Below the pieces are notes generated by a model, which made no database searches, was not told the DNA's origin, and worked only from the letters and a program-made list of their open reading frames with translations. A program made the translations under genes and the position numbers. From positions 17,546,001 to 17,610,000 of the forward strand of contig OZ038379.1 of the NCBI GenBank assembly GCA_964036045.1: DNA of 64,000 nt, given 5' to 3'. Origin of the DNA: Eutreptiella sp. 'Long Island Sound 2002' (lineage: Eukaryota; Protista; Euglenida). Of this stretch, positions 6,757 to 63,132 are shown piece after piece (position 1 is the stretch's first letter; every line of letters begins with the position of its first letter).

Positions 6757-6993
<237 letters not shown>

Positions 6994-7027
6994 CATGGAA
7001 ACCGCAAGAACCGTGGCAATGAGTGCC

Positions 7028-7945
7028 TTACAAACGGGGCTTGACCATCTTCGCCAGATCCTGAACGGCGCCCTGCGGCGACTTGGAGCTCTGGGGGGAC
7101 AGCGGAGTCGAAGAACCCCCGTCCGTTGGCGGGGTGGCCGGGAGGCTCAGAGGAGGGGGCGTCCTCCGTCCCTCCGGGGCAGGCCCCAGCCCAGGGCTAA
7201 GGGGGGGCTTGCCACTCCAGGGCGACTGCACCTCCTTTCCACTGGCCGTCCCGTGTCGGGGCGACTTCACAGTGAAGGACAGGGACAGCTCCGCGGAGAG
7301 CGGCGACAGGTGCGCGAGGGGGCGCCGGCGCCCGGCGGGCGCGACGGGGGTCAGCAGGCGGTGGCCCGCGGGGCTGCCCGGGGACAGCGGGCCCAAGTTG
7401 TCGCCGGACTCCGGACTCGGGACCCACCAGGGGGTCCCGCCGGTGGAGAAGTCGTAGCTGCCGCTGCGGACCATCGCGATGTCGTTCAGGTCCAGGGCCT
7501 TCAGGTCCAGCGCCGAGACCACCTCCCGCGGGGACGGCAGCATCGGGGCGTCGCCGTCCAAAAGCGTGGGGACCATGCGCACCCTCGCGATCTGGCGCTG
7601 GCCCTGGTCCTCGTACGTGTGCAGGTCGTCCACCGCCAGCTCCGTGAGGTTGGCGCACGTGGACAGGAACGGGTGCACCCACTTGCGCGGGACCTCCACG
7701 ATGACCACCCCCGTGTCCGGGTCGCAGTCGGGGAAGCTGAGCTCCGGGAGCAGCCCCCCGGTCAGCGACGTCCTCCGCCGCTGGATCGAGCCGAGGGAGG
7801 CGGCGGCGGTGGGCGGCCCCTGGGCGGTCGCGGCCGTCAGCTCCACCATCGAAATGTTGTCGATGTCCGAATAGAACTGGCCGATGTCGGAGGTGCCGTA
7901 CAGCGTCGACGTGATCTCGAAGGTGGTGTTCGGGCGGAACAGCAC
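7028..7945 (-). CDS. Exon 25 (terminal): end of the ART domain (VLFRPNTTFEI), unknown domain and Pro/Ser-rich tail
   Basis: ttttcag acceptor after a poly-C tract. Completes EAEVLF.P...F.I and ends at TAA. Confidence 0.9.
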   Translation of the reverse strand: MLFRPNTTFEITSTLYGTSDIGQFYSDIDNISMVELTAATAQGPPTAAASLGSIQRRRTSLTGGLLPELSFPDCDPDTGVVIVEVPRKWVHPFLSTCANLTELAVDDLHTYEDQGQRQIARVRMVPTLLDGDAPMLPSPREVVSALDLKALDLNDIAMVRSGSYDFSTGGTPWWVPSPESGDNLGPLSPGSPAGHRLLTPVAPAGRRRPLAHLSPLSAELSLSFTVKSPRHGTASGKEVQSPWSGKPPLSPGLGPAPEGRRTPPPLSLPATPPTDGGSSTPLSPQSSKSPQGAVQDLAKMVKPRL

Positions 7946-10900
7946 CTGAAAAGACGAGGGTTTGGCGGGGGGGGGGGGGGGGGCGAGGGGAAGTCGGATC
8001 ACCGCACTTTACTTGGACATGCAAAGGAGGGGACTCAAGGGGCGAGGGGGTGAGGGAGGGGGAGGGACCTCCAGAAAGGCGAGTTGGGTACGATGCAAAT
8101 GTCCGCCCACATCTGTCCAATTGTACTTGTGGGGGCGGGAGGGGGGGTACCATAAAGGCTGCTGCATTGCCTTGCAGTATGTCGGGTGTCCCGTGCAAAG
8201 TCTTCTGTGTCTTTTGCTTGTTCGGGGGCTTTGTGGGTGATGGTGGACCGTCTGGCGCACTGCTCATAATTGCCGCACGCTGCCCCCCCCCCCCCCCCCA
8301 CGGCGTCCACCCCTAACCAGGGCTGACAGGTTTCACATGCAGTCATTCCCAGCCCGTGATGTTGGGAAGGGGCTCTCCACCACCGATGTGGGCGGGGGCG
8401 GGGGGCGGAAGATCCACACGGGTACAAGGGGCAGCCAGGCACAACCACATGCGCAATCAAATCAGGGGAGACACGTGCGGCTGGCAGACAGACGGTGTGC
8501 ATGAGAGGACTGACTTCGTTTAACAGATCCGGGTCTCGTTGCGCCGAGCAGGCCCCATCAGCCCCCACCCATCTCCACTACACCCCCAACGCTTTGCTGG
8601 GCCCAGCCCTGAACTAAAAGGGGGGTGGGATACCTGTCAAAACCGGCGAATCACCCCACCCAACCCCACCCCAGAAGATGGTAAGAAGAAGATAAATGGA
8701 GGAACAAGAGCAGCATGAGCAACAGGACTCCAGCCCCCCCCCCTCCAAACACATGACTGGCAACTTGGACCTGAGAAAGATCAAAAGAAACCAAAGAACT
8801 TTCCTTGATCACTAAACTGCCATTGTCCATACTCAAGAGGGGAGTGGATCGTGAACACATGTGGGGTACGTTTCTCCCTCTGAATATTGCACATAAGAGC
8901 CAGCCCTGACCACTATGATCCACAAGAGTGCACGTGACCTCCCCGCTCCCAACACACAAAACCACCTCCGAGCAAAAGCACATCACAAAAAAGACAAAGC
9001 CCTGGACACCAGTCGTACTGCAAGGTGCCTGACAACCCCCTGCCCTATGGAACACCCCCCTGCCTTGGCATCCCAGGGGGCCCCCAGGGTGCTAACAGCC
9101 GTCCCCCAGAGATATGATCGGCCCAGGCTCATGGAGCACGCATCCCCTCGACTCAGCTCTACGAAACATTCCTTCGTCTGAAAAACTTCGCCGACAACGC
9201 GCCACTCCGTGTATTGCAGCAGATGTCCATATGACAAAGGGGACAAAAAAAGTCCAGACCAAGACCAATTGCCCAGACCAAAAATTCGGGAAAGGGAATG
9301 ACGAAAATAATAGCATATCGCAAATAACAAATACAAATAACATATAATAAAAAGAATAACAAATGGCAAAGAATAAACCGATGGATCGAAACAAAAATGT
9401 TAGTGGACAGTCGGTTGCTCGGGTCGGCGGATTCTTCCAGGCTGCGGTTTGCAGCGGAGATTAAATGGACCACCAGGGAATTCATGCCTTCACCCTCAGC
9501 TAGACGCATGGCGGCGGATCCATTGGCATGGTCCGTTGTCAATGTTTGGTGGTTGACCGATGGTTGATGGCTGTCCCCCCCCTGATCTACCCTCTCAAAT
9601 ACCTCAGCCTCGTCCGGGAACTTGGAAAAGCGGCCGATGGCCTTGCCTCCGGTGCACTGGATAAAGAACAGCGAGCCCTCGTCCCCCTTCACAAACTCTT
9701 TCGCCACGGTCTGCTCCGCGGAGGCGCTGGAAAAGGCAGGCCAGCAGACCGTCTGCCCCGTTCGGTACTCCCTCTCGCTGAAGCGGACGTTGATCCCGCG
9801 GTAGAGCTTGCCCTTGTGCGGCGGCAGCACCTGCAACGCCCGGTCCACCTGCAAAGAAGGAAGCCAGAGAGCACAGACTCAGGCACACCCCATCTCCGCC
9901 CCCCCCATCTCTACACACACCCTCTCTACGCACCTCAGCACCACACCCCTCCCACCCACACCCATACCCCACAGACACCTCGGCACAGTGCCCCACCTCG
10001 CCCACATCCTCACATATCCCATTCTCCCTGATCTCATCCCCACAGAGTTCCCAAGGCCCAGCGCTTTCATTTGGTCGCTTGGCAGTTGGAGGGTAACCGC
10101 CGGCGGTTGAAAGCCCTATTCTTGAACACCACTCGCTGACACGCTACAAACGACTGCGTGTGTTGCCAACCATCGGTGTCAGGCCCCGTGTTCGAACCCA
10201 CGACCTCTGGGCAGGCTTTCGGGCAGTGTTCAAGGCCTTTGGCATTTCTCCCGGCAGAATATTTGTGCCCTCCCTAAGGCTCCCTAGGAGCCTGGGGTCT
10301 TGGCTGTAGGGGCAGGGCACTAGAAGCATTCAATCAGCCGGAGTCTACCGACGGCTGGTTGGTTGAGCAGAGCAGGCGTTGGGGGTGTTCCCGCAAAGCA
10401 CCCATTTTCAGGGTGACTTTACGGGAACCAACCTCTCGTAGAGCACTCACCCCAAACCCCCGCATGCACAGGCCCAACGCTGCTCATAAACGTCACGAAG
10501 TAGCACACCATCGCTGTGCACACTGTCTTTGAGCATAGCCCTTGGGAACACAGCCCTTGGGCTGATGACGTTGTCAAGCCCAAGGGCCGCCGGAGGTCCT
10601 TAGCCCACGAATCCCATCTTTGGCTACATCCCGTGCAACGTTAGGCCAGGACATCACCATGTACACCCACACACCAGACGACACACTGGTCATGGGGACG
10701 CCGGTCAGCAGTCAAGCAGCCAACGGCCACGTATCTACAGTAAGTTTACCTCCACTGAAAAGCATCACAGACAGACTCCAAGCGGATCGCATCAGTGCCC
10801 ACCGGAATGCGAGATGCAAAATTGGGGTGAGTGGACGTGGAGGGCATGAAGCAAAATGGCACGGTGATTGATGCACCAAAATGCACTTGTGGTGGCAAAG

Positions 10901-13900
10901 GCTCCCGGTGCTCTGCATCTGCCTTCTGGTTGGGGGGTCCAAAACGGCCGGTTTCGTGCGCCGCGCGCGCACAGTCCACAGTGCGGCCCCTGGAACGGCG
11001 ATCTCTACCACAAGAGACAACAACACTGCCGAATGCCGATCAAATGTCATGTCTCAGCACCAGCACACGGCACAGGCGCATGCAAACAGGACGTCACTGC
11101 TCCAGGGACCCGTTAGCTCTGGGCAGAGGATTGGAACTTTGGGTCGAGACCAAAAAGTGGGTTGACCTGGACTGAAAAGCCGTTGCAAAAGGGTTCAGTG
11201 ACGGCGAAGAACCAAAAACGGAACAATGAAGCGGGGCAAAAACTCGGTTGCCCGGGTCTTCCGTGGAGGAGGGATTGGCAGAGACGCGCTTGAAGGGGCG
11301 GGGGGGGGGGGAGCCCCCCCCCCGCCCTTTCAGGGCCGGTCAGTTCCGTCCCACCTGCTTTCAACTGCCCCCGGCTGCCCTCCAACCGTTTTGTAACCGC
11401 CAGCACTTGCCCAGCACAGCCGCCTCTCCAACCGCCAATAACTGCTTTTGCCGGTGCTCTGGAAACAACCCTCTTGCCTCTCTGCCCCTCGACCGCATCT
11501 CTGTGCGTGGCCATAAATCAGCGATGGTTGCTACCCTCCAGAATCACTCTCGCATCCACAATAGTACCTCATGGTACTACAAGTAACTTCATCTCTGTGC
11601 GTGCGTGGGTGGGGGGCTGGGGTAAGCATTCCATGGACAACACTGTGAATCATCAACGCTCTGACCTTCAGCAACACACAACACAACACCTGCGCAATGA
11701 GCGGGCGCCAGAACGCAATGGCCTCCGGGTCCTGCGTCCGCATGGCCCTGTTCATGGCGCTGTAGATCTGGTCGGCCTCGCCGTCCAATTCGTAGGTGTA
11801 GACGTGGATGGGCACGATGTGCAGGGGGCTGAGCGTCACGCGCTGCCGCCGCAGCTCGTACACCTTCATGACGCTCTCCCCGCACATCTCCACCAGCGGC
11901 CCGTCGGTGAAGGCGAAGCCCAGCGGCGCGGCCGTCTGCGGCAGCGCCATGGCAAACGGCAGCGTTCCCACGTCCGAGCGGTAGCCCGCGTCGTAGAACG
12001 CGCTGCCGGGGCTGCCGCTGGTGGGCGCCGCCAGCCCATCCGCAAACCGGCTCTGCACCGCCTCGTACCGGCCCGGCAGCGCCCGGTCTGGGCCGGTCGC
12101 GCGCTCCGCCACCCTCTGCCGACCCAGCGCCCCGATATCCCGGGAGACCCCGTCCGGCACTCCGAAGGCCGGGGCCAGGAACTCGTCCAGCGCATCGCCG
12201 AACCACTGCTCATCGACGCTCTCCGGCAGCGTCATCCCCCGGCACTCCGGGTTCTTGCACGCCGGCATCCAGAGCGACGGGTCAACGATCCGCTTCCGGA
12301 CGAGCAGCGAAAGGGTGACCGGGTCCCACACGGCGGTCGCGATCGGCCCGGCGGCGACGCTCACGAACGCCTGGTCCCACTCCGCCACCTCGTCCAAAAC
12401 CGTCGTAACTGCCCAACCGCCATCGCCGATCCGGTACTGAATCATCGTCTGCATGTGGCAGCGCAGGGCCTGGGCCTCTTCACCCGCTCGGCGTTGCTGC
12501 AGCTCCACGAGGTCCAGGAACGTGGGCTCCTGGTCCATCTGCACGGTGACGTGCGACGCCCCGTGCCTCAGCCCCTGCGCAATCTGCTGCTGCACGAAGT
12601 TGGGGTACGTGTGCCACAGGCCGTCCCCCACGTGGGTCTGCCACCGCAGACACTGAGGGTGGCGGAGCGTGTACGCCTGGGCCACGAACTCGATGGTGGG
12701 CTCGTCGCCAGAAATGGCGGCGGCCTGCATCAGCGACAGGGCTTGCGGGATCGGCTGCACACGCACCTCCTGACGGGGGAGACGAAGGGACAGAAGGTCG
12801 GATGGCAGTCAATGAAATGCGGTCATGGCAAGCGGAAGAGCAGAACAGCATCTAAAGCGACCCCAGGGATGCTTTGACCCCCCCCCCCCGCCAGACCCCC
12901 CTCTTGGTGCACCTGCACGGGTGGGGGGGGTGGGGGGGTCCCCAGATCCCAGCGACAGAAGAGGGACCAAATTACAGATGCCCTGGCTGTCCTGCTTCAC
13001 CCAGGCAACAGGCCGCTGCACTGCCACGGTCAGGAGATCGAACATGTGTCGGTGCTACTGCGATCACCGCCCACAATCGACTCTGCTGCTGCCGCTGCCA
13101 CCACCACTACCAGTACGACGGCCGCCACCACTGTCACCCAGTGCCACCGCTTCCACACACAACGGGCATCAATCTGATCAGGTCGCGCCGCATTGGACTC
13201 CAACCGTGCTTGCTCCCCGCGGCCTTCATTGTCTACGGTCCAGGCAACTGCCGTTCGTCCGGCGACCATCACTGCCATCAATGCACTTTGTCGTCTCCCC
13301 TGGCCCCTCCCGTGGCTACACAGGGCAGAGGGGGGCTCATGGAAATCGGTACCTCCAGCGATGCAAGCAAATGACGCAAAACCATGCGATTGGAAAAAAA
13401 AAAAGAAAATGCAGCAGAGCCATGCATGGCCTGCTGGGCGCAGAGGCACCGTCCAAAGCCAAAACGGCTGTGGTCCGATGGTGTGGTGTTGGGAAGGCTG
13501 CCGTTACCCAGGACTCCGTGCCCCCGTCCCTGGGAACACCGCCAGCAGTCAGCAGGAGGCACCGGTGGTGGGCCCGGGGGCACCACCGTAGATCGACCAT
13601 CACCACGGCAATGCCGCTGCCAACGCCGGCATCAGGGCCAAGCAACGAGGGGGGCTGAGGAAGGGCCACCTCCCGCAGATCGAAGTAGACCGCATCCTCA
13701 ACGTCACCGCGCGAGTCCGCCGAGGGGCGGGCTTCGTCCGCGATGGCGCTCAGTGACAGAGGGTTGATGACCGAGGCGCTGCCCTTGTCCTTGCCACGTC
13801 TGCGGGGGCGGTATTTTGTGATGGTCTTCAGGCCCCTGGTCTTGCTCTTCAGCAGTTGCTTCCAGGTCCGAGTGGTGTCCGCAGGCGTGTCTCCGTCTCT

Positions 13901-16900
13901 GGTCAGGCTTGGGGCCAGGGCGTCTGAGTCCGGGAGCATCACACGGGAGGTCGTGTCCCCGTTGCCGAGGTAGTCTGACACGCACCACCCGACGGTGTAC
14001 CGTTTCTTGTCCTTTGGCTGGGGCGTGTAGTAGTACAAGTAGCTGCCGCGGCTGTGCCCTGCAGCAACAATGTAGGAGTGGGGGGGGCAAGGGGGATGGC
14101 CGCGGGTCAGGGGTGGGCTCATGGCTTTGCCCCACCCATGCCTGCCACAATCGCGCGTACCCTCATCACCATGAGGCCCAACAGCCCCCCCCCCCCCTCC
14201 GCAGCCGAGGACAGACGTACATGCATGGCCACGCACGCATCGGCGCATTGCCATGTGTGTCAATGTGTTGACATGCGGCGTCAACGGTCACACACAACTT
14301 AACAGTGACACGTTGACCTGCGCGTTGACATGTGCGTGATGTGCACATTGACATGACATGTGTATTAACATGTGCATGAAAGTTAACGCACCGTTGGCAT
14401 GTGTTAACCAAAAACTGACCAAAATCAATAGCTTTGAAGAAAAATGAGGAACATCAATGTTTGTGACCAAAAAGACCAACAGACGTGAAGAAAAGAGGCA
14501 AAATGAAGGACCGAGTGTGTGTGGGATTGCTGCTTTTGGGATGGATACGCGGTATTGCAGGGGCTGTCACTTAGCCCTCCAAAATGGTTGGCAGTTGATG
14601 CTGAGTGGCACACCATCCGGGCTGCTCACTGTGCGTGCGATGCGCGCTGTGTTGCTGAGCTGCATTGGGTGTCTGTGTCTGTGTGAGGGGGGTCCATGGC
14701 GGTGGCAGGCGGCCGTGTAGTACAATTGGTGCCGGATTGCTTTGTCTTTCTTGATATGACCCGCTTGTTGGCTAAGGTCAGGTCTGGGGCGTACTCTGTG
14801 GGGGGGCAGGGGGAGGCTGGGCTGGATAGACGCATTGCGCTGCGCCGTCACGCACGCGTTTAATTGACACCCCGTTCACGTACATGTCAACGCGCCGTTA
14901 CCACACCTTTAACACTCCCCTGCACATGCATATCATCCACAGTGCAAGTGTCGTCTGTAGACAGTGTGCATAGGTGTTGTACAATTTGCACATGTTGTGG
15001 ACACTGTGTCTCGCATCAATATTTTCCACCCGCGTATGCCCCCCCCGCCCCCTCACCCACCCACCCACCCACCACCAACTTCCCATCCAGTCGTTGCAAT
15101 GCATTCCACGCCAAATGGAAGTGGAGTCCAACCAGCGCATGTTTTGCAGGAAGCTGCGGTTTGGTTCCCATGTGTTGTCTGTTGTCTGTTCGTGGAGGCT
15201 GGGTCGGGCTGCACACGGAGATGTGATGGGCCATGTGGGAGGCTCCAGGGGGGCCGAGGCTTTCGGGGCAGGTGTGGGGGGGGGGGAGGCCATGACAAAG
15301 GACATACCGACATACACCGGGCGGCAGTTGTAGGACAGCGGGGGCTGCCGCACGTAGAGGTCGTCCTGGTGCCCCAGGCCCTGGACGAGGAAGCAGTCGT
15401 GCTCCTCCTCGTACTCCGGCCACACATCCAAGTGGGTGCCGCGCCGCTGCAGCAGCGCCCGCAGCTGCGGCAGGTTCCCGGCCGCCGCCGCGCAGTGCCA
15501 CGCCGTGGGGGCCCCGGGCAGGGGCCGGAGGTCGAGGTCGGGCCAGAGGTCGAGCAGGGCCCGCATGGCGTCTGGGCTCTGGCCCTTGATGGTGGCGGCG
15601 AGGAGGTGCACCAGCTCCACGTCGCTTGGGTCCTGCGCGCACCACGCGGCCAGCCCCGCCAGGTCCGTGCACACCGCGGCGCAGTGCTCGGCCCAGCAGC
15701 GGTCGTGGTACGGCCGGTGGGCCGGGCCCTCCGCCCAGCGCTCCACGACCACCGGCCGCCGGCACCGGCAGCACCGCAGGCACCGCGTGTGCGCCTTCAG
15801 GGGGGGGCCGTCCGAGGGCAGGTACGTGCCCACGACGCGCCACGGGGCCACCGCGCGCTCGCAAATGGGGCAGCGGTACGGCGCGTGCCGCATGTCGTCG
15901 CGCAGGGCCCAGACGGCGGCGGCGGCGAGGAGGGCGGCGCCGAGGGCGGCGAGGGCGAGGCCGAGGAGGGCCACGGGGAAGGAGGGGTCGGCGCCGTCGG
16001 TCATGGCGCCGAGGGCCAGGTACCAGACCAGGCCCCCAGCGATCAGGTGCAGGCCCACGAGGAGGCCCACCTGCTTCCAGGGGTTGGCCCAGCGCGGGTG
16101 CTTGACCCGCCACTTGCTCGGGTGCCGCAGCCAGTACGCCTTCGTCAGGGGGTGCGCCGCTTTGTGGAGGGCGTGGCGCCGGCCGCAGTACACGCAGCAC
16201 GGCAGCGGCGAGAGAGCGCCCAGGGCCACCAGCAGCACGACCAGGAACGACGGGGAGTGCACGACGTACAGGTCCACGTCGAGCCCGGCGGCGGGCGTGA
16301 GCCGGTCCTTGGCAGCGCTTGGGAGGGGCCCGCGGCGGCGGGCGGCGGTGGGAAGGGGCTCGTAGATGAAGAGGAGGTTGATTGGGGCGGCGCCCGCCGG
16401 GAGTACGACCCGCCGTCCCACGTCCTGCGACGTGTACTGGAGACCGCATGCCTCACCGGCCTGTGGATTGAGAGAGTGGGGACTGAGAGAGATACAGAGA
16501 GCGGGGGGACGGGGGGGGGGAGGGCTGGTTGGTCCTGGACAATCTGCAGCGGTGTGGATCACTGCCGCAAGGCATCAATTACGTCATCCGGTGTTTTCTC
16601 ATCATGTCACAACACTTCAGGGAAGGGAACTGGCGCGGTAGTAGGGGCTGGTGGAAGGCCTGCGAGTGAAGAGAGGGGCCCAAAGGGTAGTGAGACAAAC
16701 ACTTTAGAAAACGGTTGGGTTACGGTTGAGAGAGGGTTGGGAAGCAGGAGGCGGCGGTTACAAAACCGTTGGGGCCGCAGTTGAAGCAGGAAGGATGCGG
16801 TTGGAGCGCAACTGACAGTCACCGTTCTTTTTGGGGGGGAGGGGCGGGGTGCCCTCGGGGGCATCTGCTGGAGTGAGGCAGGCTGCAGGGACAAGGGTAG

Positions 16901-25143: not shown

Positions 25144-25235
<92 letters not shown>

Positions 25236-55200: not shown

Positions 55201-58200
55201 GCCCATTTAACTGCTGACTGTCCTCAACATACAGCGTGTTGAGCTCCGTCTTTTGAAAGCCACTCACAGACACAGAACTGCAACCTGTGAAATGACATGC
55301 AGAAACACCTGCCCTAAGAGCCGTGGGCGTGTGGGATCCGCTGGCTGCTTTGGGTGTGGACACAGTGGTAGCTGCTTGCACAAATGGCCGTTGTGGCCCA
55401 CTCAAATCGGCTGTGGCATTGAGCCTCAGCTTGGAATACAGCTCTTTGATGGGGAAACAGAGCCATTGGCGGCTTGTGCTTCTTTTTTTTTCCGAAACAG
55501 CACTGTGGAGAACTTTATTTAACATCTTGCTGAGCACTCGCAACCCAGGACGGAATTCTTATTGTGGCGACATGACCTTTTGGGCCCGTTGAGTTGGGTT
55601 TGTCCTTGTTCCAACCAATCGTTTTGGAATTGGACGTGCTTCGTTTGGAAGCACTAACTTGGCACACCACTCTCCGTCCCTTCTTCTGGGGATGAAACCA
55701 GCTGAAAGGGGGTCTCACTGAGAAAACAGCCATACCACCGGGGGAATAATTTGAGGGGTTTTTTTGGGGGGGGGGGGGCTAAAATGGGGGAGGGGGGGAT
55801 TTGGAACTGGTCCTTAGAACTGAAGGGAAATTTTGGTATAAGGTCCCTTGCTGTTGCTTCCTAGTGGATGGCTGCTGTTATTTCCTGATGGCCTCTGGAT
55901 GGTTGCTGTCCTTTGACACATCGCATCCTTAAAATTGAAGGAAATATTTGGTACGAGGTAGGGCTTCCAAATTTGTCCACATCAAATTTGTCCCTTTCTA
56001 AATTTTCCCCCGGTGGTAGCATAGGGCCACGGCTTGGATGACTGTTTTTTCCTTATTGATTTTGTGTATGCCCCCAATCACAGTGAAAAAGAATTGGATC
56101 CGCGCAGCAGAGTCCATCTTGAAATCTCAGGACAAAAAGGCCCAAACTGCCATTTTTGACTACCTTTTTGGCTGCTGAGGCACCAATGGCTCTGTTTGGG
56201 CAACCAATCAGCATTAAATTGCCTTTTGTCACAGGCTCCTCCTCCCCCAAGCCACTGTCCTCCTCCTGTCTCTGATTGGCTGTTGGATTCCGGTTTTATT
56301 TTACATGTGCATCCATCCCGGGAGCACAAATTGGAACCACCTTTGGTTGTACTAACGAACCACTCTGGGGTCCATGACACTGTGGGGATATGTATCAACT
56401 CGCCACTTTGGGGTCCCCGAAATGGTAGAGGTTATGTGGATATGTGGATCCCGTTCGCCGCGTCCATGTGAAATCGCCTCCCGAGGTGGTCCAGGTGCCA
56501 TTGCAGAAGGTGCCAGTCCCCGAGACAAAATAACAGGTGCGAGAACCTGCACAGTGGGCACGTGTGGGTGGTGACGGCCCACCACCAACTCGCATACAAG
56601 TAGGGGACCCTCCACAGGCTGTGGCAACCCCTGATGGAGTATTTGTATCAATTAAAAACACACTGGCCGGTGCTGTAGCCAGCGCACAACCCGCCCAAAG
56701 AACTGGGAAAGAGTTTCAGGAGTAGCTGGTCCCGAATTTGTCACCCCCCCCAACCCCCACTGCAGTTCTCCACAAGGCTTGGTGTGTGTGGGGGGTTAGA
56801 GGTAGACACATGGAGGCGGTGCATTGGGTGACAGGCAAAGGAAGGTGTGAAGTTTGAGAGACGTGTGAATGAAGCCCATGTCTTCCAGCTGTCTGACACA
56901 GACTAACTTGCTTACGCGTGATATGAGTTGGCACATTGCTCCATGCAGCGCTCACCCGTTGCAGATTTGTGGTTCACCACACTGCACCCCCTGTAGGGGT
57001 TCGCAGCTGAGTAGCCGCCAAATGCTGCGGGATCTGTTTGGCACAAGACGGTCCAACGGTCCACCCAAGGGTAGCAGTGCCCTACTCGCATCCCAGGGGC
57101 TCTCCCTCCGGCCGTACAAGGCACATGCAGACGCTGGGAGGTCACAGCACTGGCACAGGCTGCAAGCCCGGCCGCCCCCATCCCCCATTCTCGGGCACAA
57201 TTTTTCAAACCCTACATGGCGGCCACTGGGACTACCGTGCCACTCGTGCAGGTGACTGTAGAGACGGGGGCTGGTTACCAGGAACCAGTTTGCAAATGCG
57301 GTTTTCAATATGCTACAATCCTGTCCCTCCTCTCGGGATGCAAGGCACTTGGGCACTGGCGTTGTTGCCTGGCATCCCCAGTGGCAACAATGCTCACACC
57401 TTTGCTTGTACACCCTTTTACACCCCTCACTCCACACCCTATGTTTGCTGATGTTATATTTCCGCCACTAGTAGTATCATATACCCTTGCATATCCCTGT
57501 CACCACCCCACATCCCAATTGTGATTAAAATTGCTTTTAGTGTTGATGACCTTTTGCCATTGGGTCGTTCGTTCGCGCGGTAAGAATTCTCAATGCATGA
57601 CTTTTTATTTATCCATTTTCATTCCTTTTGGCCAATCATTGTGGAAAAGATGTGGCGCTGTTTGGAACCATCAGCTTGGTACACCAGCAATCGTCCTGCA
57701 CTTTCACGGTCAGGCCAAAAACAGGCCAAAAACAGGCTGGTAGGTGCGTAAACCACTGGCTGTTGAAGGTATCGTACAGAACAAAGCCCCTGACAGGGCG
57801 ACAAACATACCGCTGCAAACGACTTGCGCTGCACTTGCCTGTTGCCAGGATGAATCCCACCACTCTTCCCAATTTGCATTTGTGAAATGAGCAGATGATT
57901 GAGCCGATGCGAAGGCGTAGCAGCCGCCCCCAAGATTCTTGTTCCAATCACCTTGCGAACCAATTTGGTATTCACTGTTCCTCGAACACCAGTAGATGTA
58001 GTAAGTCCCGCTTTTGTCCCAGAATGTTGTCTGCCCATTTAACTGCTGACTGTCCTCAACATACAGCGTGTTGAGCTCCGTCTTTTGAAAGCCACTCACA
58101 GACACAAACCTGCAACCTGTGAAATGACATGCAGAAACACCCGCCCTAAGAGCCGTGGGCGTGTGGGATCCGCTGGCTGCTTTGGGTGTGGACACAGTGG

Positions 58201-61200
58201 TAGCTGCTTGCACAAATGGCCGTTGTGGCCCACTCAAATCGGCTGTGGCATTGAGCCTCAGCTTGGAATACAGCTCTTTGATGGGGAAACAGAGCCATTG
58301 GCGGCTTGTGCTTCTTTTTTTTTCCGAAACAGCACTGTGGAGAACTTTATTTAACATCTTGCTGAGCACTCGCAACCCAGGACGGAATTCTTATTGTGGC
58401 GACATGACCTTTTGGGCCCGTTGAGTTGGGTTTGTCCTTGTTCCAACCAATCGTTTTGGAATTGGACGTGCTTCGTTTGGAAGCACTAACTTGGCACACC
58501 ACTCTCCGTCCCTTCTTCTGGGGATGAAACCAGCTGAAAGGGGGTCTCACTGAGAAAACAGCCATACCACCGGGGGAATAATTTGAGGGGTTTTTTTGGG
58601 GGGGGGGGGGGCTAAAATGGGGGAGGGGGGGATTTGGAACTGGTCCTTAGAACTGAAGGGAAATTTTGGTATAAGGTCCCTTGCTGTTGCTTCCTAGTGG
58701 ATGGCTGCTGTTATTTCCTGATGGCCTCTGGATGGTTGCTGTCCTTTGACACATCGCATCCTTAAAATTGAAGGAAATATTTGGTACGAGGTAGGGCTTC
58801 CAAATTTGTCCACATCAAATTTGTCCCTTTCTAAATTTTCCCCCGGTGGTAGCATAGGGCCACGGCTTGGATGACTGTTTTTTCCTTATTGATTTTGTGT
58901 ATGCCCCCAATCACAGTGAAAAAGAATTGGATCCGCGCAGCAGAGTCCATCTTGAAATCTCAGGACAAAAAGGCCCAAACTGCCATTTTTGACTACCTTT
59001 TTGGCTGCTGAGGCACCAATGGCTCTGTTTGGGCAACCAATCAGCATTAAATTGCCTTTTGTCACAGGCTCCTCCTCCCCCAAGCCACTGTCCTCCTCCT
59101 GTCTCTGATTGGCTGTTGGATTCCAGTTTTATTTTACATGTGCATCCATCCCGGGAGCACAAATTGGAACCACCTTTGGTTGTAGTAACGAACCACTCTG
59201 GGGTCCGTGACACTGTGGGGATATGTATCAACTCGCCACTTTGGGGTCCCCGAGATGGTAGAGGTTATGTGGACACTTTGGTTTATCCCCGCTTTGGGGC
59301 CTTTGAGACGGCAGTGGGTATCCGCTTTCCATTTCATCCCCGCTTTCGGGTCCCCGAGACGAAAGTGGTTACAAAGACACTCTGGGTCATCCCTGCTGGG
59401 GGGTGCTTGAGGTCCTCCAATCGTAATAATAATCAGGTAGAACAATGACAACAACAACTGCAGCAACAACAACAAGTGCCAGGAAAAAAATTTCTCCCGA
59501 ATACCAGTATGATATTGGACGTTCAACCCTTTGTAGAATCATCATTATGGGAGATAAAAGTAACCCCCAATGACTTTTGTGAACTTTAATCAGCCCCCCC
59601 CCCCCCCCCCCGCCCGCCCCAGCTGGGTGCCGCTTTTTGGGGGGAGGGTGAGATGGGGGGGAGGGGGGTCAAACTTTGGTTGGCCTGTTGTGGCCAGTAT
59701 ACGTCGAGCCAAACCCAGGTCCCAATGCCTTTTCCTTCTGTATGGACCCCTGAACCGATGGTGGGGGTCCCGGGTTCCATGTCTGGGTAAATCAGCCCCA
59801 CTATATGGGGCCCCTCTAGCGAGGACAGCCGTCATGGGTTGTGCCATTGGCTAGGTACCTTGTGCGAGGCTCTGGGGGACAACAAATCTATGTGCACATG
59901 TTCAATTTGCCCGAAGCCTGGATACCATATATACCCGCCTTACACCCGCCTTACATATACCCGCCTTCAATGATGTTTCAGTAGCAATCTACGAAAAGCA
60001 CGGGCACTCAGAGCATACCACGGCACGCTGTGCAGGATCCTCCACAATCAACACCAGTCTCGTCGCCGTTTTGTACCGCATCAGTGCATGTTGTTGGAAC
60101 TGCACAACACGCCACAGGAGAATCCCAGTTAAAGCTCAGGGCACACACACACACACACAAATGGGGTTGAACGGTCACAGTTTAATTAGGAGCAGCAGAG
60201 TTGCACAAGTTGTTCACAGTGACGACTTGTTGCAACGGACAGGGATTTCCATTGATTGTCACGGTTGCTGAAACAGAACAATCCAACATACAATGCAACA
60301 TGCAATGCGGTAAACACAGAGTGGAATCTCCAATTGCCTGTGCACCAAGCAAAGATCTTACCGCCCAAACTTTTAAAATTTGCGAAACCTGCATTTTTGC
60401 GAAGGCCCCAACCTTGGAATTAATTTTTTTTGCGATTATTGTTTCAATTTGCGTTCACAAACAAAGCTAGTGCATCCAATTGAATTGTCCATGCATACAA
60501 ATGACACACTGCGGGCCCAGACATGAGCAATTCATCATCATGAACAATTGAATGAAATCAGTACATCCCAATTGACTTGTCTAGGCGTGCATGAAAGCAG
60601 GGGGTGGTCAGAATTTTGATGCCTGCCCAATATTTCTCGGGGACATTCAGAATATGCCAACTTTGTGGGTTTTGGCACTTTTCGGCATTTTCTACAAGTT
60701 TTGCTTCCATGTGCAAACATGTTGTCACCTGGGGGGGGGGGGGGGGTATGTGTATACTTTTTGAAATCTGCAAGAAAACGCCATTTCAGAAATTTATGGG
60801 TTCGGGGGGGGGTCACATTTCTCAGCGTAGCACAACACATTGGACGGCGCACACAAACATGGCACTGCACCGTTCATCCATTTTTACTCTGAATCACTGT
60901 CATCGTCAGCATTCCCTTTTTCAGGCAGGGCTGGGACCCCATTAGGGCAGACATCCCCATGTTTGTGGACAGGGACATATTTCTTCACTTTTTGCCAATC
61001 CTGCAACCTCCGTGCCTTCACTGGCACCCAGCCTTCGTCAAGGGGCATGGCCCACAGGCCATCGGTTGTGAGGTGCACGTTTCGTTGTTTGAGCAACCCG
61101 CTGTACGAGGCTTCTTGGCCTGCCTGGCAGGCTCCCGAGGCACCTTCCTCCAAGTTTCACCCCCAGAGCGTGCCCTTTTGCAAACCAAAGGCTTTTGTGG

Positions 61201-63132
61201 TGCAGCTGGGGAAGCAACAGCCCATGGAGTGAATTTGTATGTAGACATGGTAGCTGCCTGCTGACAAAAGGAGGCAGCAAGCAACACAGGCACCGTCCAA
61301 AACGGACGAAAATCTCAAACATGTTGTCAGTACAGCATGCAGACCCAGGGTGTTCCAAATAGCCCTTTCCAAGGGCTTTCCGAATATACCCCACATACCC
61401 CTACCTCCGGAACACTCAGTGGGCACAAATGAGGCAACAATGGCACCGACCCCCGAAAACCCACAAAGTTGGCATAATCAGCAACGTCCCCGAGAGATAT
61501 ATCAAAACCAGAAACTCAGAGCTCATAACTTGATGCGTAGAATTCATCAAGTTTTTGCGATTATTTGGAATTTTGCGTTGTCCTTGTTGATTGTACGGCT
61601 AGAATGTTTTTTTTTCGCAATCAACTTTTGTTTGCGTGGAACTAACTTTATACGCACGGCCTACCCCAGAATTAATCAGCTTTAACTTTCCTCAAGTTTG
61701 ACCGGTGATGTTCAATGTGTTCTGCAGTTCACAGTCCAAACGGGATCAGCTAACTTGATACCCGAAAATGATTGCAGTATTTCAAAAATGCCAGGCACTT
61801 CGAATTACCAAGCCGGCTTCAAACTTTCCGGGCAAGCTGTGCTCGGAGTGATTGTGGTGATCTTCTTCTATCACATCCTTCAAACACTTTTCCAGGCATA
61901 TGGGTAGGCTTGGCATTCGTTAGTTTCTTCAAACTTTACTATTGCAAAAGTGCCAGCGTCGAAAATCAGGCCCAACAAAGGAAATCCCAAGACAGTCTGG
62001 GACTCTGAGTACCACAAAAATCTCTGGGGTGTGGAATTTTATGAGCCTCAACCCCCCCAACCTCCAACCCCCCATTCGAGTGCTTTGGCCAAAGGGGATG
62101 ACGCCAATTGTCAAATGTCACAGTCGGTCCCTATCCCCAAGTTTTCTCCACCACACCAAAGGCCCCTGAAATACACAGCACCCCAAGCACCAAGCACACC
62201 AAGCACCCCCCCACCCAAGCCTTCCTCATCGCTTCTACACAACCCCTACCGTGGTTACCTTGTGTGCTGGTGTTGGTGTGTGATGAGATGCTACGGCATG
62301 TGCTGCACGTGCTTCTGACTTGCCCATTAGTTACCCCCAGTTGTTTGGTGCTTAATCTAGCCCCGCACAGTTGCGGCCTGCATCACTCTCTGCTGCTACA
62401 TCAGCGCTGGACCGTTGATGCCATGACACCAAGAAAAATGGCTACGGAATTTTATGTACCATGGCATAATTTGGCACACTTTTGCTGTGCGAAATTTTGT
62501 CGTCCCAAACTTTGCTTTTTCCAAATCCCCCCCCCCACGTACAACAGACACGTGTAATCTGCAAATCCAATGCTGCCCTAGAAGGCACCAAGAAGGGTGG
62601 GGCTGGAGGTTGGACTCCCCCCCCCCTGGGGATGCTTGTTAAATGGAGCTCTGGGGTCGGTGAGCGGTTCTAGTTGATCCCCACACCTCCTGTGGCCCAC
62701 CGCCCGGAGGGCTGGACGGGGATTCCCGTAAGAAACCCTGAGACATTGGACAAAAAAAAGGGGGGGTGGGGAGTGGGGGATGGCAAGGCTATGGGTGAGT
62801 GGTGGAGGGGATCGTGGGGGAAAGGCTGTGGCACCGTTCTAACAACAAAAGCATGGGCTCAACACAACGACCTGAGGCATCGACACATGGATCTCCACCA
62901 ACACATCCGTGGGCAGCTGCACAATTCAGTGCCTTCACGGTGGTGCTACCCGTCTGGAGGTTCAGTGTTGCGCAGGAAGTTGCATCCGTGCACTGGCATG
63001 CGCAGTCTGAGTAGCACATCGAAGTGCCCCCAGGGCATCCAGAGCAACACGCCCAGTCCACTGTGCTGCGCCCGTTGGGGTCGATTTTCCAGTACGCCGA
63101 GGGGCAATTTGATTGATTGCCAGCCGTAAATC
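7028..63132 (-). CDS. Giant multi-exon gene (25 exons traced, about 6,020 aa, 5'-incomplete): modular receptor with 3 TM helices and a cytoplasmic ADP-ribosyltransferase domain
   Basis: Open GC-rich exons are each flanked by ..AG acceptors and GT.. donors, and intron phases match at all 24 junctions. Domains read through junctions, e.g. DEAE|VLFRP, YATDS|ENDGW, IIF(R)|YHMYG, SWSQ|VWIR. Stop TAA at 7028-7030. Confidence 0.8.
9603..9848 (-). CDS. Exon 24: catalytic core of an R-S-E type mono-ADP-ribosyltransferase
   Basis: LYRG (R), WPAFSSAS (S-x-S) and FPDEAE (E-x-E). 246 nt, phase 0-0. Confidence 0.9.
11350..11450. repeat. Dispersed repeat with an inverted relative at about 16700-16800
   Basis: cctgctttcaactgc..ccaaccgttttgtaaccgcc is the approximate reverse complement of ggcggttacaaaaccgttgg..gcagttgaagcagg. 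Confidence 0.6.
11690..12769 (-). CDS. Exon 23: WWE-like domain, unknown region and the N-terminal helices of the ART domain
   Basis: WQTHVGDGLWHTYPNFVQQQIAQG..V..FLDLVELQQ; VYTYE..IYSAMNRAMR. 1080 nt, phase 0-0. Confidence 0.88.
13670..14058 (-). CDS. Exon 22: cytoplasmic linker (YLYYY..YTVGWCVSDYLG module and a basic segment)
   Basis: gctgcag acceptor, gtggcc donor, phase 1-0. Confidence 0.8.
15308..16460 (-). CDS. Exon 21: three TM helices, a LIM-like zinc finger and an ankyrin-like repeat
   Basis: Three hydrophobic stretches; Cx2Cx23Hx2Cx2Cx2Cx18Hx2C; TAWHCAAAAGNLPQLRALL. Phase 0-1. Confidence 0.88.
18239..22329 (-). CDS. Exon 20: four RCC1 repeats, a Ser/Thr mucin-like stalk of about 1,090 aa and a small juxtamembrane domain
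   Basis: 4091-nt open frame, gcaacag acceptor, gtcagc donor, phase 1-0. Confidence 0.88.
22352..22420. repeat. (CACAA/CACAG)n pentamer array next to the exon 20 acceptor
   Basis: Directly visible. Confidence 0.85.
23036..24109 (-). CDS. Exon 19: Cys-rich/sushi-like segment, three RCC1 repeats and a Cys-rich insert
   Basis: G.N..GQLG...TP..L...I..VA.G..HT.F occurs three times. Phase 1-1. Confidence 0.88.
24553..24886 (-). CDS. Exon 18: GON-like domain
   Basis: QYINLP..TTWQKLRI..VDQTDTTYTTSNG..WGVAKDC..YRLSLVGTPFRV resembles the ADAMTS9/20 GON core. Phase 0-1; the donor could be 3 nt further. Confidence 0.72.
25145..25234. repeat. (CAA)n microsatellite
   Basis: Directly visible. Confidence 0.97.
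25340..25701. repeat. (CACAT)n pentamer array, degenerate at the left end
   Basis: Directly visible. Confidence 0.95.
25908..27155 (-). CDS. Exon 17: discoidin/F-type-lectin-like domain and repeated CL..G.Y.F..DGW.GG beta-sandwich modules
   Basis: 1248 nt, phase 0-0. VREVRLWPR..LALAEVEVF; CLAAGAYTFVATARYGDGWRGG. Confidence 0.85.
28123..28329. mobile_element. hAT-like MITE, 207 bp
   Basis: Perfect 13-bp TIRs CAGGGCTTCTTTT / AAAAGAAGCCCTG and an exact 8-bp TSD ACGCACGC at 28115-28122 and 28330-28337. Confidence 0.88.
30035..31317 (-). CDS. Exon 16: discoidin-like and LamG/concanavalin-like domains, then start of a small beta-sandwich
   Basis: FVGIRL..VQYVAWGRD..FTLQYT..MRLVV; ARLLVNGEQ..WIG..LRGVIG. 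Phase 1-0. Confidence 0.85.
32800..33302 (-). CDS. Exon 15: unknown beta module (YVDRDWRFVTLG..PWIAAEGW)
   Basis: gttccag acceptor, gtacgc donor, phase 2-1. Confidence 0.78.
34877..35877 (-). CDS. Exon 14: copy 2 of the unnamed repeat, a Cys module and a discoidin/F-type-lectin-like domain
   Basis: HLHIREIEAY..RTIDGDYDTQYHS..WVEWVL..VKLWN. Phase 0-2. Confidence 0.82.
36753..37090 (-). CDS. Exon 13: farnesoic-acid-O-methyltransferase-like beta domain
   Basis: FEVQALTNAHLGL..YEFVIGGWGNTRSVLRR..W..G.LSVG..WMSW.D matches the Methyltransf_FA pattern. Phase 1-0. Confidence 0.8.
38344..39074 (-). CDS. Exon 12: end of the lectin-like module, a CQD..GW.D.DG..C..Y module, and copy 1 of an unnamed ~110-aa repeat
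   Basis: ccctcag acceptor, gtatgc donor (alternative donor 3 nt away), phase 2-1. Confidence 0.8.
40383..40680 (+). repeat. Dispersed ~300-bp repeat, copy 1
   Basis: Direct-orientation, highly similar copy at 46433-46729 (cccttcgcatgttgcgtc...cccaggtgccctgc). Confidence 0.88.
41217..41751 (-). CDS. Exon 11: NGDETGVDCGG module and start of a lectin-like module (NVLGTDFALY)
   Basis: Phase 1-2. Joins exon 12 to give DMNGWRYCNYGDADVGFPRDCG, a motif I recall from Aplysia egg-lectin-like sequences (unverified). Confidence 0.8.
42067..42534 (-). CDS. Exon 10: Cys-rich extracellular module (GCSAGTRAGF..IAAC..CAPGWHVC..)
   Basis: ttcgcag acceptor, gtcccc donor, 468 nt, phase 1-1. Confidence 0.8.
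43172..43644 (-). CDS. Exon 9: C-terminal part of MAM domain 2 plus an unknown module
   Basis: YHMYGADMGSLSV..W..AQV..VRFVGVTGSLYTGDAAVADV. Phase 2-1. Confidence 0.85.
43931..44010. repeat. Minisatellite, 5 perfect copies of GGGTGTGTGAATGTGT
   Basis: Directly visible, followed by degenerate GT-rich sequence. Confidence 0.95.
45224..46363. mobile_element. 1.14-kb TIR element with a 6-bp TSD and a zinc-finger ORF remnant
   Basis: TIRs CAACC..CCCCCCAATTCGGCG / CGCCGAATTGGGG..GGTTG, TSD TACTCT at 45218-45223 and 46364-46369, and AATTCGGC subterminal repeats at both ends. Confidence 0.72.
45461..45524 (+). promoter_or_regulatory. Possible tRNA-derived Pol III A/B box pair
   Basis: TGGTTGAATGG at 45461 (A-box-like) and GGTTCAAACCC at 45514 (B-box-like). 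No convincing cloverleaf. Confidence 0.35.
46433..46729 (+). repeat. Dispersed ~300-bp repeat, copy 2
   Basis: Matches 40383-40680. Confidence 0.88.
46877..47411 (-). CDS. Exon 8: NGDETGADCGG module, Cys module and N-terminal part of MAM domain 2
   Basis: ctctcag acceptor, gtgccg donor, phase 1-2. Contains the MAM motif TPSSSTGP..YVYLESS. Confidence 0.85.
47890..48010 (+). repeat. Short repeat family built from TGGCTACATAACCCCTGCCTTCTCGG subunits (also about 44380-44450 and 51830-51890)
   Basis: The same subunit motif recurs two to three times at each of three intronic sites. Confidence 0.65.
49907..50105. repeat. (GGCGGTT)n-like degenerate heptamer array; a more degenerate reverse-complement array lies at about 41030-41150
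   Basis: Directly visible. Confidence 0.88.
50571..50801 (-). CDS. Exon 7: PAN/apple-like Cys module (GYISGGGDL..MTPLEAQFICSNDASCLGYTW)
   Basis: gcttcag acceptor, gtatgc donor, 231 nt, phase 1-1. Confidence 0.7.
52806..52965 (-). CDS. Exon 6: MAM domain 1, C-terminal part
   Basis: VWIRSGAQH..WSDARF..QVRFVGRTGDSWTGDAAIADVTL. Phase 0-1. Confidence 0.85.
53395..53714 (-). CDS. Exon 5: MAM domain 1, N-terminal part
   Basis: WTRRTGSTPSSTTGPSGG..YVYLEASSP..FKYHMYGASIGSLKV matches the MAM consensus. Phase 1-0. Confidence 0.85.
54979..55284 (-). CDS. Exon 4: duplicated ectodomain module, copy X1
   Basis: ttcacag acceptor, gtatgt donor, 306 nt, phase 1-1. Lies 2832 bp from exon 3. Confidence 0.78.
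55735..56016. mobile_element. Tc1/mariner-like (TA-TSD) MITE; second copy at 58567-58849 created by the duplication
   Basis: TIR CCACCGGGGGAA / TTCCCCCGGTGG flanked by TA on both sides. Confidence 0.7.
56395..56546 (-). pseudogene. Truncated copy of the first MAM exon, cut by the duplication junction and running into a stop
   Basis: Identical to the start of exon 5 (GSRTCYF...WTRRTGS) with the acceptor intact, then reads TYPHNLYHFGDPKVAS* in non-homologous sequence. Confidence 0.75.
57811..58116 (-). CDS. Exon 3: duplicated ectodomain module, copy X2 (GCRFVSVSGFQKTELNTLY...WEEWWDSSWQQASAAQVVCS)
   Basis: ttcacag acceptor, gtatgt donor, 306 nt, phase 1-1, open frame. Confidence 0.7.
60019..60099 (-). 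CDS. Exon 2: 27-codon Cys-rich module PTTCTDAVQNGDETGVDCGGSCTACR (not in the supplied ORF track)
   Basis: gtgcag acceptor and gtatgc donor, phase 1-1. The same motif recurs in exons 8 and 11. Confidence 0.8.
60635..61495. mobile_element. Degenerate TIR element enclosing ORF fragments
   Basis: Perfect 21-bp inverted repeat at 60653-60673 and 61456-61476, plus a 10-bp inverted repeat at 60635-60644 and 61486-61495. True ends not resolved. Confidence 0.5.
62872..63132 (-). CDS. Exon 1 (most 5' exon found): Cys-rich module GFTAGNQSNCPSAYWKIDPNG...CCSGCPGGTSMCYSDCACQC
   Basis: Acceptor tctgcag at 63133-63135, phase 1. Donor gtcgtt at 62871 or gtagca at 62949, both phase 1, so the 3' boundary is uncertain. 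Confidence 0.55.

Follow-up and report, generated by a model that had tools for sequence, protein, structure and literature searches.

A giant modular gene of a euglenid family encoding a predicted three-helix membrane protein with a cytoplasmic ADP-ribosyltransferase

The window analysed here is the whole 64,000-nucleotide stretch of contig OZ038379.1 (positions 17,546,001 to 17,610,000) of Eutreptiella sp. 'Long Island Sound 2002', a piece of GC-rich eukaryotic DNA that is part of a 2.28-Gb genome. Its minus strand carries one giant gene model of 25 phase-compatible GT-AG exons, which runs from 63132 to 7028 and comprises 5,909 codons and a stop codon, with no internal stops. From the N- to the C-terminus, the predicted product is laid out as Cys-rich and MAM modules, an RCC1 propeller, a stalk, three transmembrane (TM) helices, a Cys/His zinc module, an ankyrin region, a WWE domain, an ADP-ribosyltransferase (ART) of the R-S-E type, and a tail rich in Ser/Thr-Pro (S/T-P) motifs.

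The model was built from homology-guided GT-AG junctions and, in the 5' part, from phase-1 symmetric exons. A tblastn search with 48 guide proteins returned 643 high-scoring segment pairs (HSPs) on the minus strand, and all 164 HSPs of five paralogues that are each encoded by a single open reading frame (ORF) lie on this strand, colinear from ~60.2 kb to 7.5 kb. The 20 best-anchored exons (53714 to 7028) alone account for 5,542 codons. Pfam scans of the open frames of the minus strand detected ART (PF01129), RCC1 repeats, a Methyltransf_FA-like domain and MAM; nothing similar was found on the plus strand of the window in these scans. A preliminary description of the locus had proposed 25 phase-compatible GT-AG exons and a protein of about 6,020 amino acids (aa). 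The rebuilt model, with its open frame on the minus strand over the same span, bears out the former and the giant size, and the length is now put at 5,909 codons, a gap that is due only to the choice of some splice sites. The exons are as follows.

62872..63132, minus strand: exon 1, Cys-rich ectodomain module; tblastn to P0001 (50.6% identity, E 2.7e-22) and P0026; phase-1 AG acceptor, no ATG.
62157..62229, minus strand: alternative first exon, candidate only, with an ATG, the signal-peptide-like MRKAWVGGCLVCLVLGVLCISGAF and a phase-1 GT donor; open frame when spliced to 60099.
60019..60099, minus strand: exon 2, small Cys motif QNGDETGVDCGGSC; tblastn to five paralogues.
57811..58116, minus strand: exon 3, upstream copy of a duplicated 306-nt ectodomain exon, phase 1-1; duplication analysis.
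56400..56546, minus strand: exon 4, MAM N-terminal fragment cut by the breakpoint at 56444, use uncertain; tblastn, junction and duplication analysis.
54979..55284, minus strand: exon 5, downstream copy of the duplicated exon; duplication analysis.
53434..53714, minus strand: exon 6, N-terminal half of MAM domain 1; Pfam MAM positions 1-89 of 158, E 1.9e-5; 69-73% identity to paralogues.
52806..52995, minus strand: exon 7, C-terminal half of MAM domain 1; tblastn 59-74% identity; junction score 481.
50543..50801, minus strand: exon 8, ectodomain module; tblastn 69% identity to C12; 3' junction without guide protein.
46877..47437, minus strand: exon 9, Cys motif and N-terminal half of MAM domain 2; tblastn.
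43413..43644, minus strand: exon 10, C-terminal half of MAM domain 2; Pfam MAM E 2.3e-7, 31.2 bits (cut-off 26.4).
41217..41650, minus strand: exon 11, Cys motif and a module without recognised fold; tblastn, homology-guided junctions.
38286..39074, minus strand: exon 12, ectodomain module without recognised fold; tblastn to C21, C18 and C11; 3' junction without guide protein.
36517..37086, minus strand: exon 13, Methyltransf_FA-like (lectin-like) domain; Pfam PF12248 E 3.7e-17; neither junction bridged by a guide.
34882..35920, minus strand: exon 14, ectodomain module without recognised fold; tblastn 40% identity over 318 aa to C21.
32800..33274, minus strand: exon 15, ectodomain module; tblastn to C20 and C21.
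30035..31317, minus strand: exon 16, ectodomain module without recognised fold; tblastn 42% identity over ~440 aa, E 9e-86.
25935..27155, minus strand: exon 17, ectodomain module, with a galactose-binding or F5/8-type-C-like fold as a weak lead; tblastn 42-49% identity, E 6e-97; Atlas feature score 0.85.
24595..24886, minus strand: exon 18, ectodomain module; tblastn 60-65% identity.
23044..24109, minus strand: exon 19, RCC1 repeats; Pfam RCC1 E 5.7e-28.
18239..22427, minus strand: exon 20, RCC1 (to ~21707), Thr/Ser/Pro stalk (21715-18443) and start of the juxtamembrane domain; Pfam RCC1 E 3.9e-38, paralogue alignment; alternative donor 18203.
15308..16424, minus strand: exon 21, rest of the juxtamembrane domain, TM1 (16250-16188), TM2 (16070-16002), TM3 (15980-15903), Cys/His module (15878-15681), ankyrin (15620-15441) and start of a beta domain; translation, at least 109 genome matches; alternative acceptor 16451.
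13670..14058, minus strand: exon 22, rest of the beta domain and a disordered linker; tblastn to all five paralogues; junction score 307.
11690..12769, minus strand: exon 23, WWE (12652-12407), then a helical stretch and the ART's N-terminal helices; Pfam WWE E 0.0098; 44-50% identity to paralogues.
9603..9848, minus strand: exon 24, catalytic core of the ART, with the Arg in LYRG (9806-9795), Ser-x-Ser (SSAS, 9731-9720) and Glu-Ala-Glu (9611-9603), the second Glu being immediately followed by the intron; Pfam ART 35.7 bits (cut-off 22.3), E 7.4e-9; 62-74% identity to paralogues.
7028..7945, minus strand: exon 25, the closing strands of the ART (VLFRPNTTFEITS...), then a conserved segment after the ART, the tail rich in S/T-P and the stop codon (7030-7028); junction PDEAE/VLFRPN as in uninterrupted paralogues.

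In some places the model admits more than one choice. Exons 3-5 lie inside a head-to-tail duplication (53612-56440 and 56444-59273; 2,830 bp) of 99.15% identity, and because of this location it is uncertain which of them are used. The breakpoint at 56444 truncates one MAM exon, and 14 of the 23 mismatches between the two copies fall within a single 306-nt exon (55284-54979 / 58116-57811), a clustering for which diversifying change, gene conversion or an assembly issue could be responsible. The junction from the stalk to the TM exon can be drawn at 18239/16424, with canonical-looking sites, or at 18203 joined to 16451 or 16424, with the best homology; all three options are in phase. Splicing of the candidate first exon (62229-62157) to 60099 gives an equally open frame of 5,847 codons; this ATG exon sits in GT-rich DNA and could have arisen by chance. 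A (CA)n/(TG)n microsatellite of ~280 bp occupies window positions 6750-7027, directly past the stop codon, in the presumed 3' untranslated region.

The continuity of the ectodomain with the membrane and cytoplasmic parts was assessed by comparison with paralogues. Six paralogue regions were examined, five of which hold uninterrupted ORFs of 5,202-7,554 aa. In each of the five, a giant N-terminal region is followed by three clustered hydrophobic helices and then by ~1,000-1,300 aa of C-terminal sequence; four of them begin with a signal-like N-terminal helix, and most share PCC after TM1 and WY in TM2. The exons of the window are colinear with these intron-free paralogues and are therefore arranged as in one continuous polypeptide. 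A conserved juxtamembrane domain is interrupted by the intron that separates the stalk exon from the TM exon, so that the ectodomain exons and the TM/cytoplasmic exons cannot be separate genes. The ORF calls of paralogues P0026 and P0001 end exactly at the window donors 15308 and 11690, so these intron positions are common to the window and the paralogues. Across the last two introns, the spliced peptide of the window reads AFWRPLIAQ/VDRALQ and PDEAE/VLFRPNT, as in an uninterrupted paralogue.

Immediately 5' of its start codon, paralogue C12 has a relic of the spliced leader (2 mismatches in 24 nt), and C18 has a more decayed one. Both intronless copies appear to be derived by retroposition from mature trans-spliced mRNAs with the complete layout, and the relic at C12 would therefore mean that a mature mRNA once carried this layout in full. 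The closest paralogue of the TM exon is just 50-52% identical, which indicates that the frame has been kept open for a long time. Judged from the intron-free paralogues and from the transcripts of other euglenids, and independently of the assumptions on splicing, the ectodomain, the three TM helices and the ART are encoded in one reading frame. The claim of the preliminary description that the ectodomain and ART exons form one gene is upheld by the single-ORF paralogues, the Euglena transcripts and the split juxtamembrane domain.

The ectodomain of ~4,700 aa is composed of Cys-rich spacers, MAM and lectin-like modules, the RCC1 propeller, a stalk of O-glycosylation type and the juxtamembrane domain. 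The stalk encompasses 1,091 aa, of which 32% are Thr, 24% Ser and 10.5% Pro, and the RCC1 repeats of the window are located between the extracellular-type modules and this stalk. Extracellular-type domains are represented by MAM in the window and by SRCR, PAN and F5/8-C in paralogues. Signal peptides are seen in paralogues and in the Euglena gracilis transcript EG_transcript_4; the window gene has one candidate, at 62229. The median number of Lys and Arg residues in 54 family sequences is 8 in the loop between TM1 and TM2 and 1 in the loop between TM2 and TM3, with 10 vs 0 in the window. Because of this charge bias, the signal peptides of the paralogues and the extracellular-type domains in front of the helices, an N-out, C-in topology is supported, which would place the zinc module, the ankyrin region, the WWE domain and the ART in the cytoplasm. 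The loop charges of the 54 sequences thus agree with the cytoplasmic position first proposed for the ART.

A Cys motif, (A/C)xxQNGDETG(V/A)DCGGSCxxC, recurs in front of several ectodomain modules, both in the window (60020-60097, 47300-47436 and 41500-41650) and in paralogues. No Pfam family matches it, and it has the appearance of a spacer or linker module peculiar to the family.

The cytoplasmic module (~1,075 aa) comprises the Cys/His module, the ankyrin region, a beta domain, a disordered linker, the WWE domain, the R-S-E ART and the S/T-P tail, which has 15 S/T-P motifs in 273 aa. Only the fold of the ART spans three exons; its catalytic Arg, Ser-x-Ser and Glu-x-Glu all lie on a single one (9848-9603). 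Among the 55 family sequences that cover the ART core, the number with the conserved residue is 55 for the Arg, 51-55 for the Ser positions and 54-55 for the Glu positions, and the sequences with these near-invariant residues are otherwise only 35-75% identical. The uninterrupted paralogues score 49-53 bits against PF01129. An AlphaFold model was obtained for the cytoplasmic part of paralogue C21, whose core shares 72% identity with that of the window (856 aa, 107-row alignment; predicted local distance difference test score (pLDDT) 82.9, predicted template modelling score 0.84). The ART fold of this model matches HopU1 (Z 18.1), XopAI (Z 17.6), Tre1 (Z 17.5) and rat ART2.2 (Z 17.4), with a Foldseek E value of 4e-7. 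HopU1, Tre1, ART2.2 and Vis are arginine-specific enzymes. On the basis of the Glu-x-Glu motif and the closest folds, the ART of the window gene is predicted to be an NAD+-dependent arginine mono-ADP-ribosyltransferase.

Residues 409-476 of the C21 model correspond to a WWE fold (DTX1, Z 9.7 with a root mean square deviation (rmsd) of 1.3 Å over 63 residues; HUWE1, Z 9.6; TRIP12, Z 9.1). A profile of 47 family sequences matched solved WWE domains of DTX1 (7.5e-9), TRIP12 (6e-8), Deltex (2.3e-7), HUWE1 (5.6e-5) and RNF146 (0.0016), and single sequences score 16.7, 15.7 and 19.2 bits, under the Pfam PF02825 cut-off of 21.1 bits. The ankyrin region was recognised by a family profile against ankyrin/DARPin chains (E 1.8e-23 to 1e-9) and by the structure predicted for the exon of the window itself (pLDDT 89.7), which matches at Z 8-9.8. 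The Cys/His module has the spacing C-x2-C-x23-24-H-x2-C-x2-C-x2-C-x18-H-x2-C in the window and in the family consensus, with seven of the eight positions at least 90% conserved; the reference spacing of LIM domains is C-x2-C-x16-23-H-x2-C-x2-C-x2-C-x16-21-C-x2-(C/H/D). For the family profile of this module, LIM proteins (E 0.12-2.7) were not better matches than eS26 zinc ribbons, and the hit list of its structure search was filled by ankyrin. The domain order of the preliminary description stands, the parts recovered being MAM, Methyltransf_FA-like, RCC1, stalk, three TM helices, ankyrin, WWE, ART and S/T-P tail; the LIM-like element is reduced to a Cys/His spacing without a significant profile match. 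The beta domain between ankyrin and WWE has no credible profile match in the PDB; a match to CTLA-4 (E 0.003) is probably spurious.

Features of both sides of the membrane bear on the possibility that the protein is a structural or adhesive surface glycoprotein, which would anchor mucilage or the pellicle or adhere to the substrate. The ART would then act constitutively on the cortical cytoskeleton or serve as a docking module, and no information would pass from outside to inside. Such a role would suit the mucin-type stalk of 1,091 aa, the MAM and lectin-like modules and the extreme size, with an open frame of up to 14,111 aa in the family; the PCC motif after TM1 may be a lipidation site in a three-TM anchor. 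We nevertheless consider it quite unlikely, as near-invariant catalytic residues at 35-75% identity and a conserved WWE reader argue for a regulated enzyme, and a hundred paralogues with differing ectodomains exceed structural need.

The window gene is not unique, being one of at least ~100 paralogues. The count of paralogues in the genome, which the preliminary description had suggested, gave at least 109 matches to the TM module or exon and at least 150 PF01129 matches above the cut-off, out of 364 candidates; many of the latter belong to open frames that are thousands of codons long. When 1.84 billion representative proteins were searched with the cytoplasmic part of C21, 113 of them matched at E <= 1e-30. 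E. gracilis EG_transcript_4 encodes 5,356 aa with a signal peptide, three TM helices at 4168-4276 and WWE/ART at 4625-5126, and further family transcripts of this species are EG_transcript_47 and EG_transcript_79; the best identity of the last in the window genome is 46%. The E. longa transcript GGOE01024141 encodes 1,818 aa with three TM helices and an ART, and a soluble ART protein of Ploeotia vitrea was among the relatives found. The window gene is best explained as one intact member of a gene family specific to euglenids. Since transcripts of E. gracilis and E. longa share the layout, it is, by this comparison of sequences, transcribed in two other euglenids and older than their split from the source organism.

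The core of the euglenid spliced leader, TTTCTGAGTGTCTATTTTTTTTCG, occurs in 5,458 copies in the genome (reversed control, 0), and no dinoflagellate spliced leader was found there. The leader thus marks the source organism as a euglenid. Intronless giant paralogues with a decayed leader 5' of the start are found at L019 ~2344-2368 (G000:C12, ~47771344) and at L022. The leader relics 5' of starts, together with the 5,458 dispersed core copies, suggest that the family, and perhaps many other genes, multiplied by large-scale retroposition of trans-spliced mRNAs. An open frame of 14,111 codons, which may rank among the longest ORFs of the genome, contains the TM module at G000:C14:29355978-29356730; an ART match is located ~7 kb off. 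Tandem arrays are present at G000:C20:17.8-19.1 Mb and C20:24.18-24.33 Mb, with ~20 near-identical TM-module matches and a separate ART array at ~24 kb spacing. Elsewhere in the genome, an ER-type HSP90 gene (L034, G000:C16:42891667-42896247) is encoded by a single ORF of 724 codons, with identities of 74% to E. gracilis, 78% to an MMETSP transcript, 72% to E. mutabilis, and 98% and 94% to JGI environmental contigs. The HSP90 identities to named euglenids separate the source organism from E. gracilis and from the MMETSP euglenid, and the 46% of EG_transcript_79 likewise speaks against E. gracilis.

The size and make-up of the family raise the possibility of a surface sensor for innate immunity or self/non-self discrimination, in which shuffled ectodomains would recognise pathogens, predators or other cells and a toxin-type ART would be the effector of cell shutdown or killing. 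This would accord with a very large lineage-specific expansion (150 or more ART and 109 or more TM-module matches), with ectodomain modules that are reshuffled and take differing positions in P0001, P0026, C12 and C18, with the concentration of 14 of the 23 differences of the 99.15% tandem duplication in one 306-nt exon, and with closest ART folds that belong to toxins and effectors. There is, however, no link to a pathogen, and the WWE domain, the ankyrin region, the zinc module and the S/T-P tail fit regulated signalling equally well. We regard the proposal as unlikely in this specific form; it is a special case of a receptor function, not an exclusive alternative to it.

Taken as a whole, the product of the window gene is probably a giant N-out, C-in receptor-enzyme of a euglenid-specific family, with a cytoplasmic ART as its output, a reading that we hold with moderate confidence. 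The preliminary description had named it a receptor ADP-ribosyltransferase. The architecture it implied, an ectodomain, TM helices and a cytoplasmic ART with conserved catalytic residues, was recovered; control by a ligand or by contact is an inference from that architecture. A receptor function would be a reasonable deduction on the same grounds; the protein would be located in the plasma membrane, and its ectodomain would be coupled to the enzyme. An event at the ectodomain (a ligand, surface or cell contact, possibly clustering) might alter the activity or the surroundings of the cytoplasmic ART, which would consume NAD+ and mono-ADP-ribosylate arginine on its own chain or on nearby cortical proteins. 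The WWE domain could recognise an ADP-ribose-type nucleotide moiety and thereby allow docking of the product or a feed-forward effect. Substrates may be brought in by the ankyrin and zinc modules, and the S/T-P tail would permit control by kinases.

Several observations weigh against this receptor-enzyme reading of the window copy. Position 63132 is a phase-1 acceptor without a start codon, and a start codon and signal peptide of the window copy were looked for and not found; the 1.5 kb upstream beyond the window contain neither family homology nor a spliced-leader relic. Six junctions have no bridging guide protein, namely exon 1 to 2, exon 2 into the duplicated region, 50543/47437, 38286/37086, 36517/35920 and a short gap within the modelled exon 9. 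The junction search was confined to GT-AG introns, and the non-conventional introns that euglenids also use lie outside its scope. RCC1 repeats are usually intracellular. The sequencing runs that contain the locus are DNA only, with no RNA run among those found, and no transcript-derived protein of the window locus was found in the protein collection. This collection contains only ORF-level calls of the same DNA (P0030, P0031, P0119 and P0128; 99.6-99.8% identity), and a search among giant proteins returned, besides the query itself, four genomic ORF calls, all of them paralogues.

In four genomic-DNA runs, contigs over 12400-18399 are unspliced across the splice sites and thus uninformative on splicing; apparent 'joints' in these contigs have sides of 20-30 nt at short intronic repeats. 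Short intronic segments (17400-17600, 16600-16800, 15000-15199, 14000-14199 and 12800-12999) reach 5-80 times the word depth of the surrounding contig in the DNA runs. These segments are short repeats of very high copy number and cause spurious 'joints' when contigs are aligned.

The missing start codon, the lack of RNA evidence for the locus and the position of 5' exons inside a recent duplication that truncates one MAM exon would also be expected if the model fused two or more genes, or if the locus were an unexpressed pseudogene. Against this stand 5,909 open codons across 24 introns, a closest paralogue of only ~50% identity, by which the frame has been kept open for a long time, the colinearity of the exons with single-ORF paralogues and transcripts, and a conserved domain that is split by the critical intron. 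A merged model or a pseudogene is therefore, in our view, highly improbable. A receptor-enzyme remains the preferred reading, and it can be extended, as a speculative idea that we rate as doubtful, to a receptor class of the euglenids' own with arginine mono-ADP-ribosylation as its output. In this extension, the fast-changing shuffled ectodomains of more than 100 members would form a repertoire for pattern recognition or allorecognition, and the toxin-type ART would be read by the protein's own WWE domain.

To our knowledge, the output of known receptor-enzymes is a kinase, a phosphatase or a cyclase. R-S-E ADP-ribosyltransferases are mainly known as bacterial toxins and vertebrate ecto-enzymes. 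The euglenid family puts an R-S-E ART and a reader domain of ADP-ribose type on the predicted cytoplasmic face of giant modular surface proteins, and, as a large, conserved and transcribed family, it would turn ADP-ribosylation into a candidate for a primary output of transmembrane signalling in one lineage of eukaryotes. Literature searches on Euglena or euglenids together with ADP-ribosyltransferase or ADP-ribosylation returned nothing relevant. The transcriptome study of E. gracilis (Ebenezer et al. 2019, PMC6366073) reports expanded cyclase, kinase and REC families and leaves ribosylation unmentioned, and the paper on the chromosome-level genome does not mention ADP-ribosylation. Reviews and a 2026 preprint on ART architectures describe no receptor of TM helices and an R-S-E ART; the review of Aravind et al. 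2015 lay outside this coverage. The novelty that had been supposed for the architecture agrees with these searches, within the same coverage: the architecture is real and conserved and apparently undescribed, that of a putative receptor-enzyme with a new output. The family would explain part of the unexplained coding expansion of euglenid genomes and supplies natural pairs of WWE and R-S-E ART for biochemistry. Genome editing is reported to be established in Euglena gracilis (PMC13142649); with family members assembled as transcripts in this species (EG_transcript_4, 47 and 79), the idea is directly testable there.

Among known systems, the vertebrate ecto-ARTs ART1-ART5 belong to the same Pfam family (PF01129) and share the R-S-E signature with Glu-x-Glu; rat ART2.2 (PDB code 1gxy) superimposes with Z 17.4 and an rmsd of 3.2 Å over 202 residues. 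These enzymes are small, GPI (glycosylphosphatidylinositol)-anchored or secreted, and extracellular, whereas the euglenid ART is predicted to be the cytoplasmic end of a three-TM protein of ~5,900 aa, after the zinc, ankyrin and WWE modules. The best structural matches are bacterial enzymes with an R-S-E core, HopU1 (3u0j, Z 18.1), XopAI (6k94, Z 17.6), Tre1 (6drh, Z 17.5) and Vis (4xzj, Z 14.0). By contrast with the euglenid ART, which would be endogenous, membrane-tethered and active inside its own cell, these are injected or secreted single-domain toxins that act on another cell. Bacterial polymorphic toxins of the Rhs type (6aqk, Z 9.9) resemble the family as giant modular proteins with a C-terminal ART and a diversified membership. 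They export the C-terminal domain into a target cell, whereas the TM helices, charge bias and cytosolic-type domains of the euglenid protein would keep the ART inside the producer; no cleavage or release module was seen in it.

The WWE fold is shared with the PARPs PARP7, 11, 12, 13 and 14 and with the E3 ligases DTX1, RNF146, HUWE1 and TRIP12. In WWE-containing PARPs, a WWE reader is paired with an ADP-ribosyl writer, as in the euglenid protein. These PARPs are soluble and belong to the diphtheria-toxin-like H-Y-E clade, whereas the euglenid WWE domain is joined to a cholera-toxin-like R-S-E ART on a predicted membrane protein. In its general plan, with a membrane span between a variable ectodomain and a conserved enzyme in the cytoplasm, the euglenid protein is comparable to receptor tyrosine kinases, receptor guanylyl cyclases and the receptor-type adenylate cyclases of trypanosomatids and Euglena, and the receptor-type cyclases of Euglenozoa likewise form large lineage-specific families (PMC6366073). 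It differs from receptor kinases and cyclases, which have one TM helix, in its three TM helices and in its predicted output, an ADP-ribosyltransferase.

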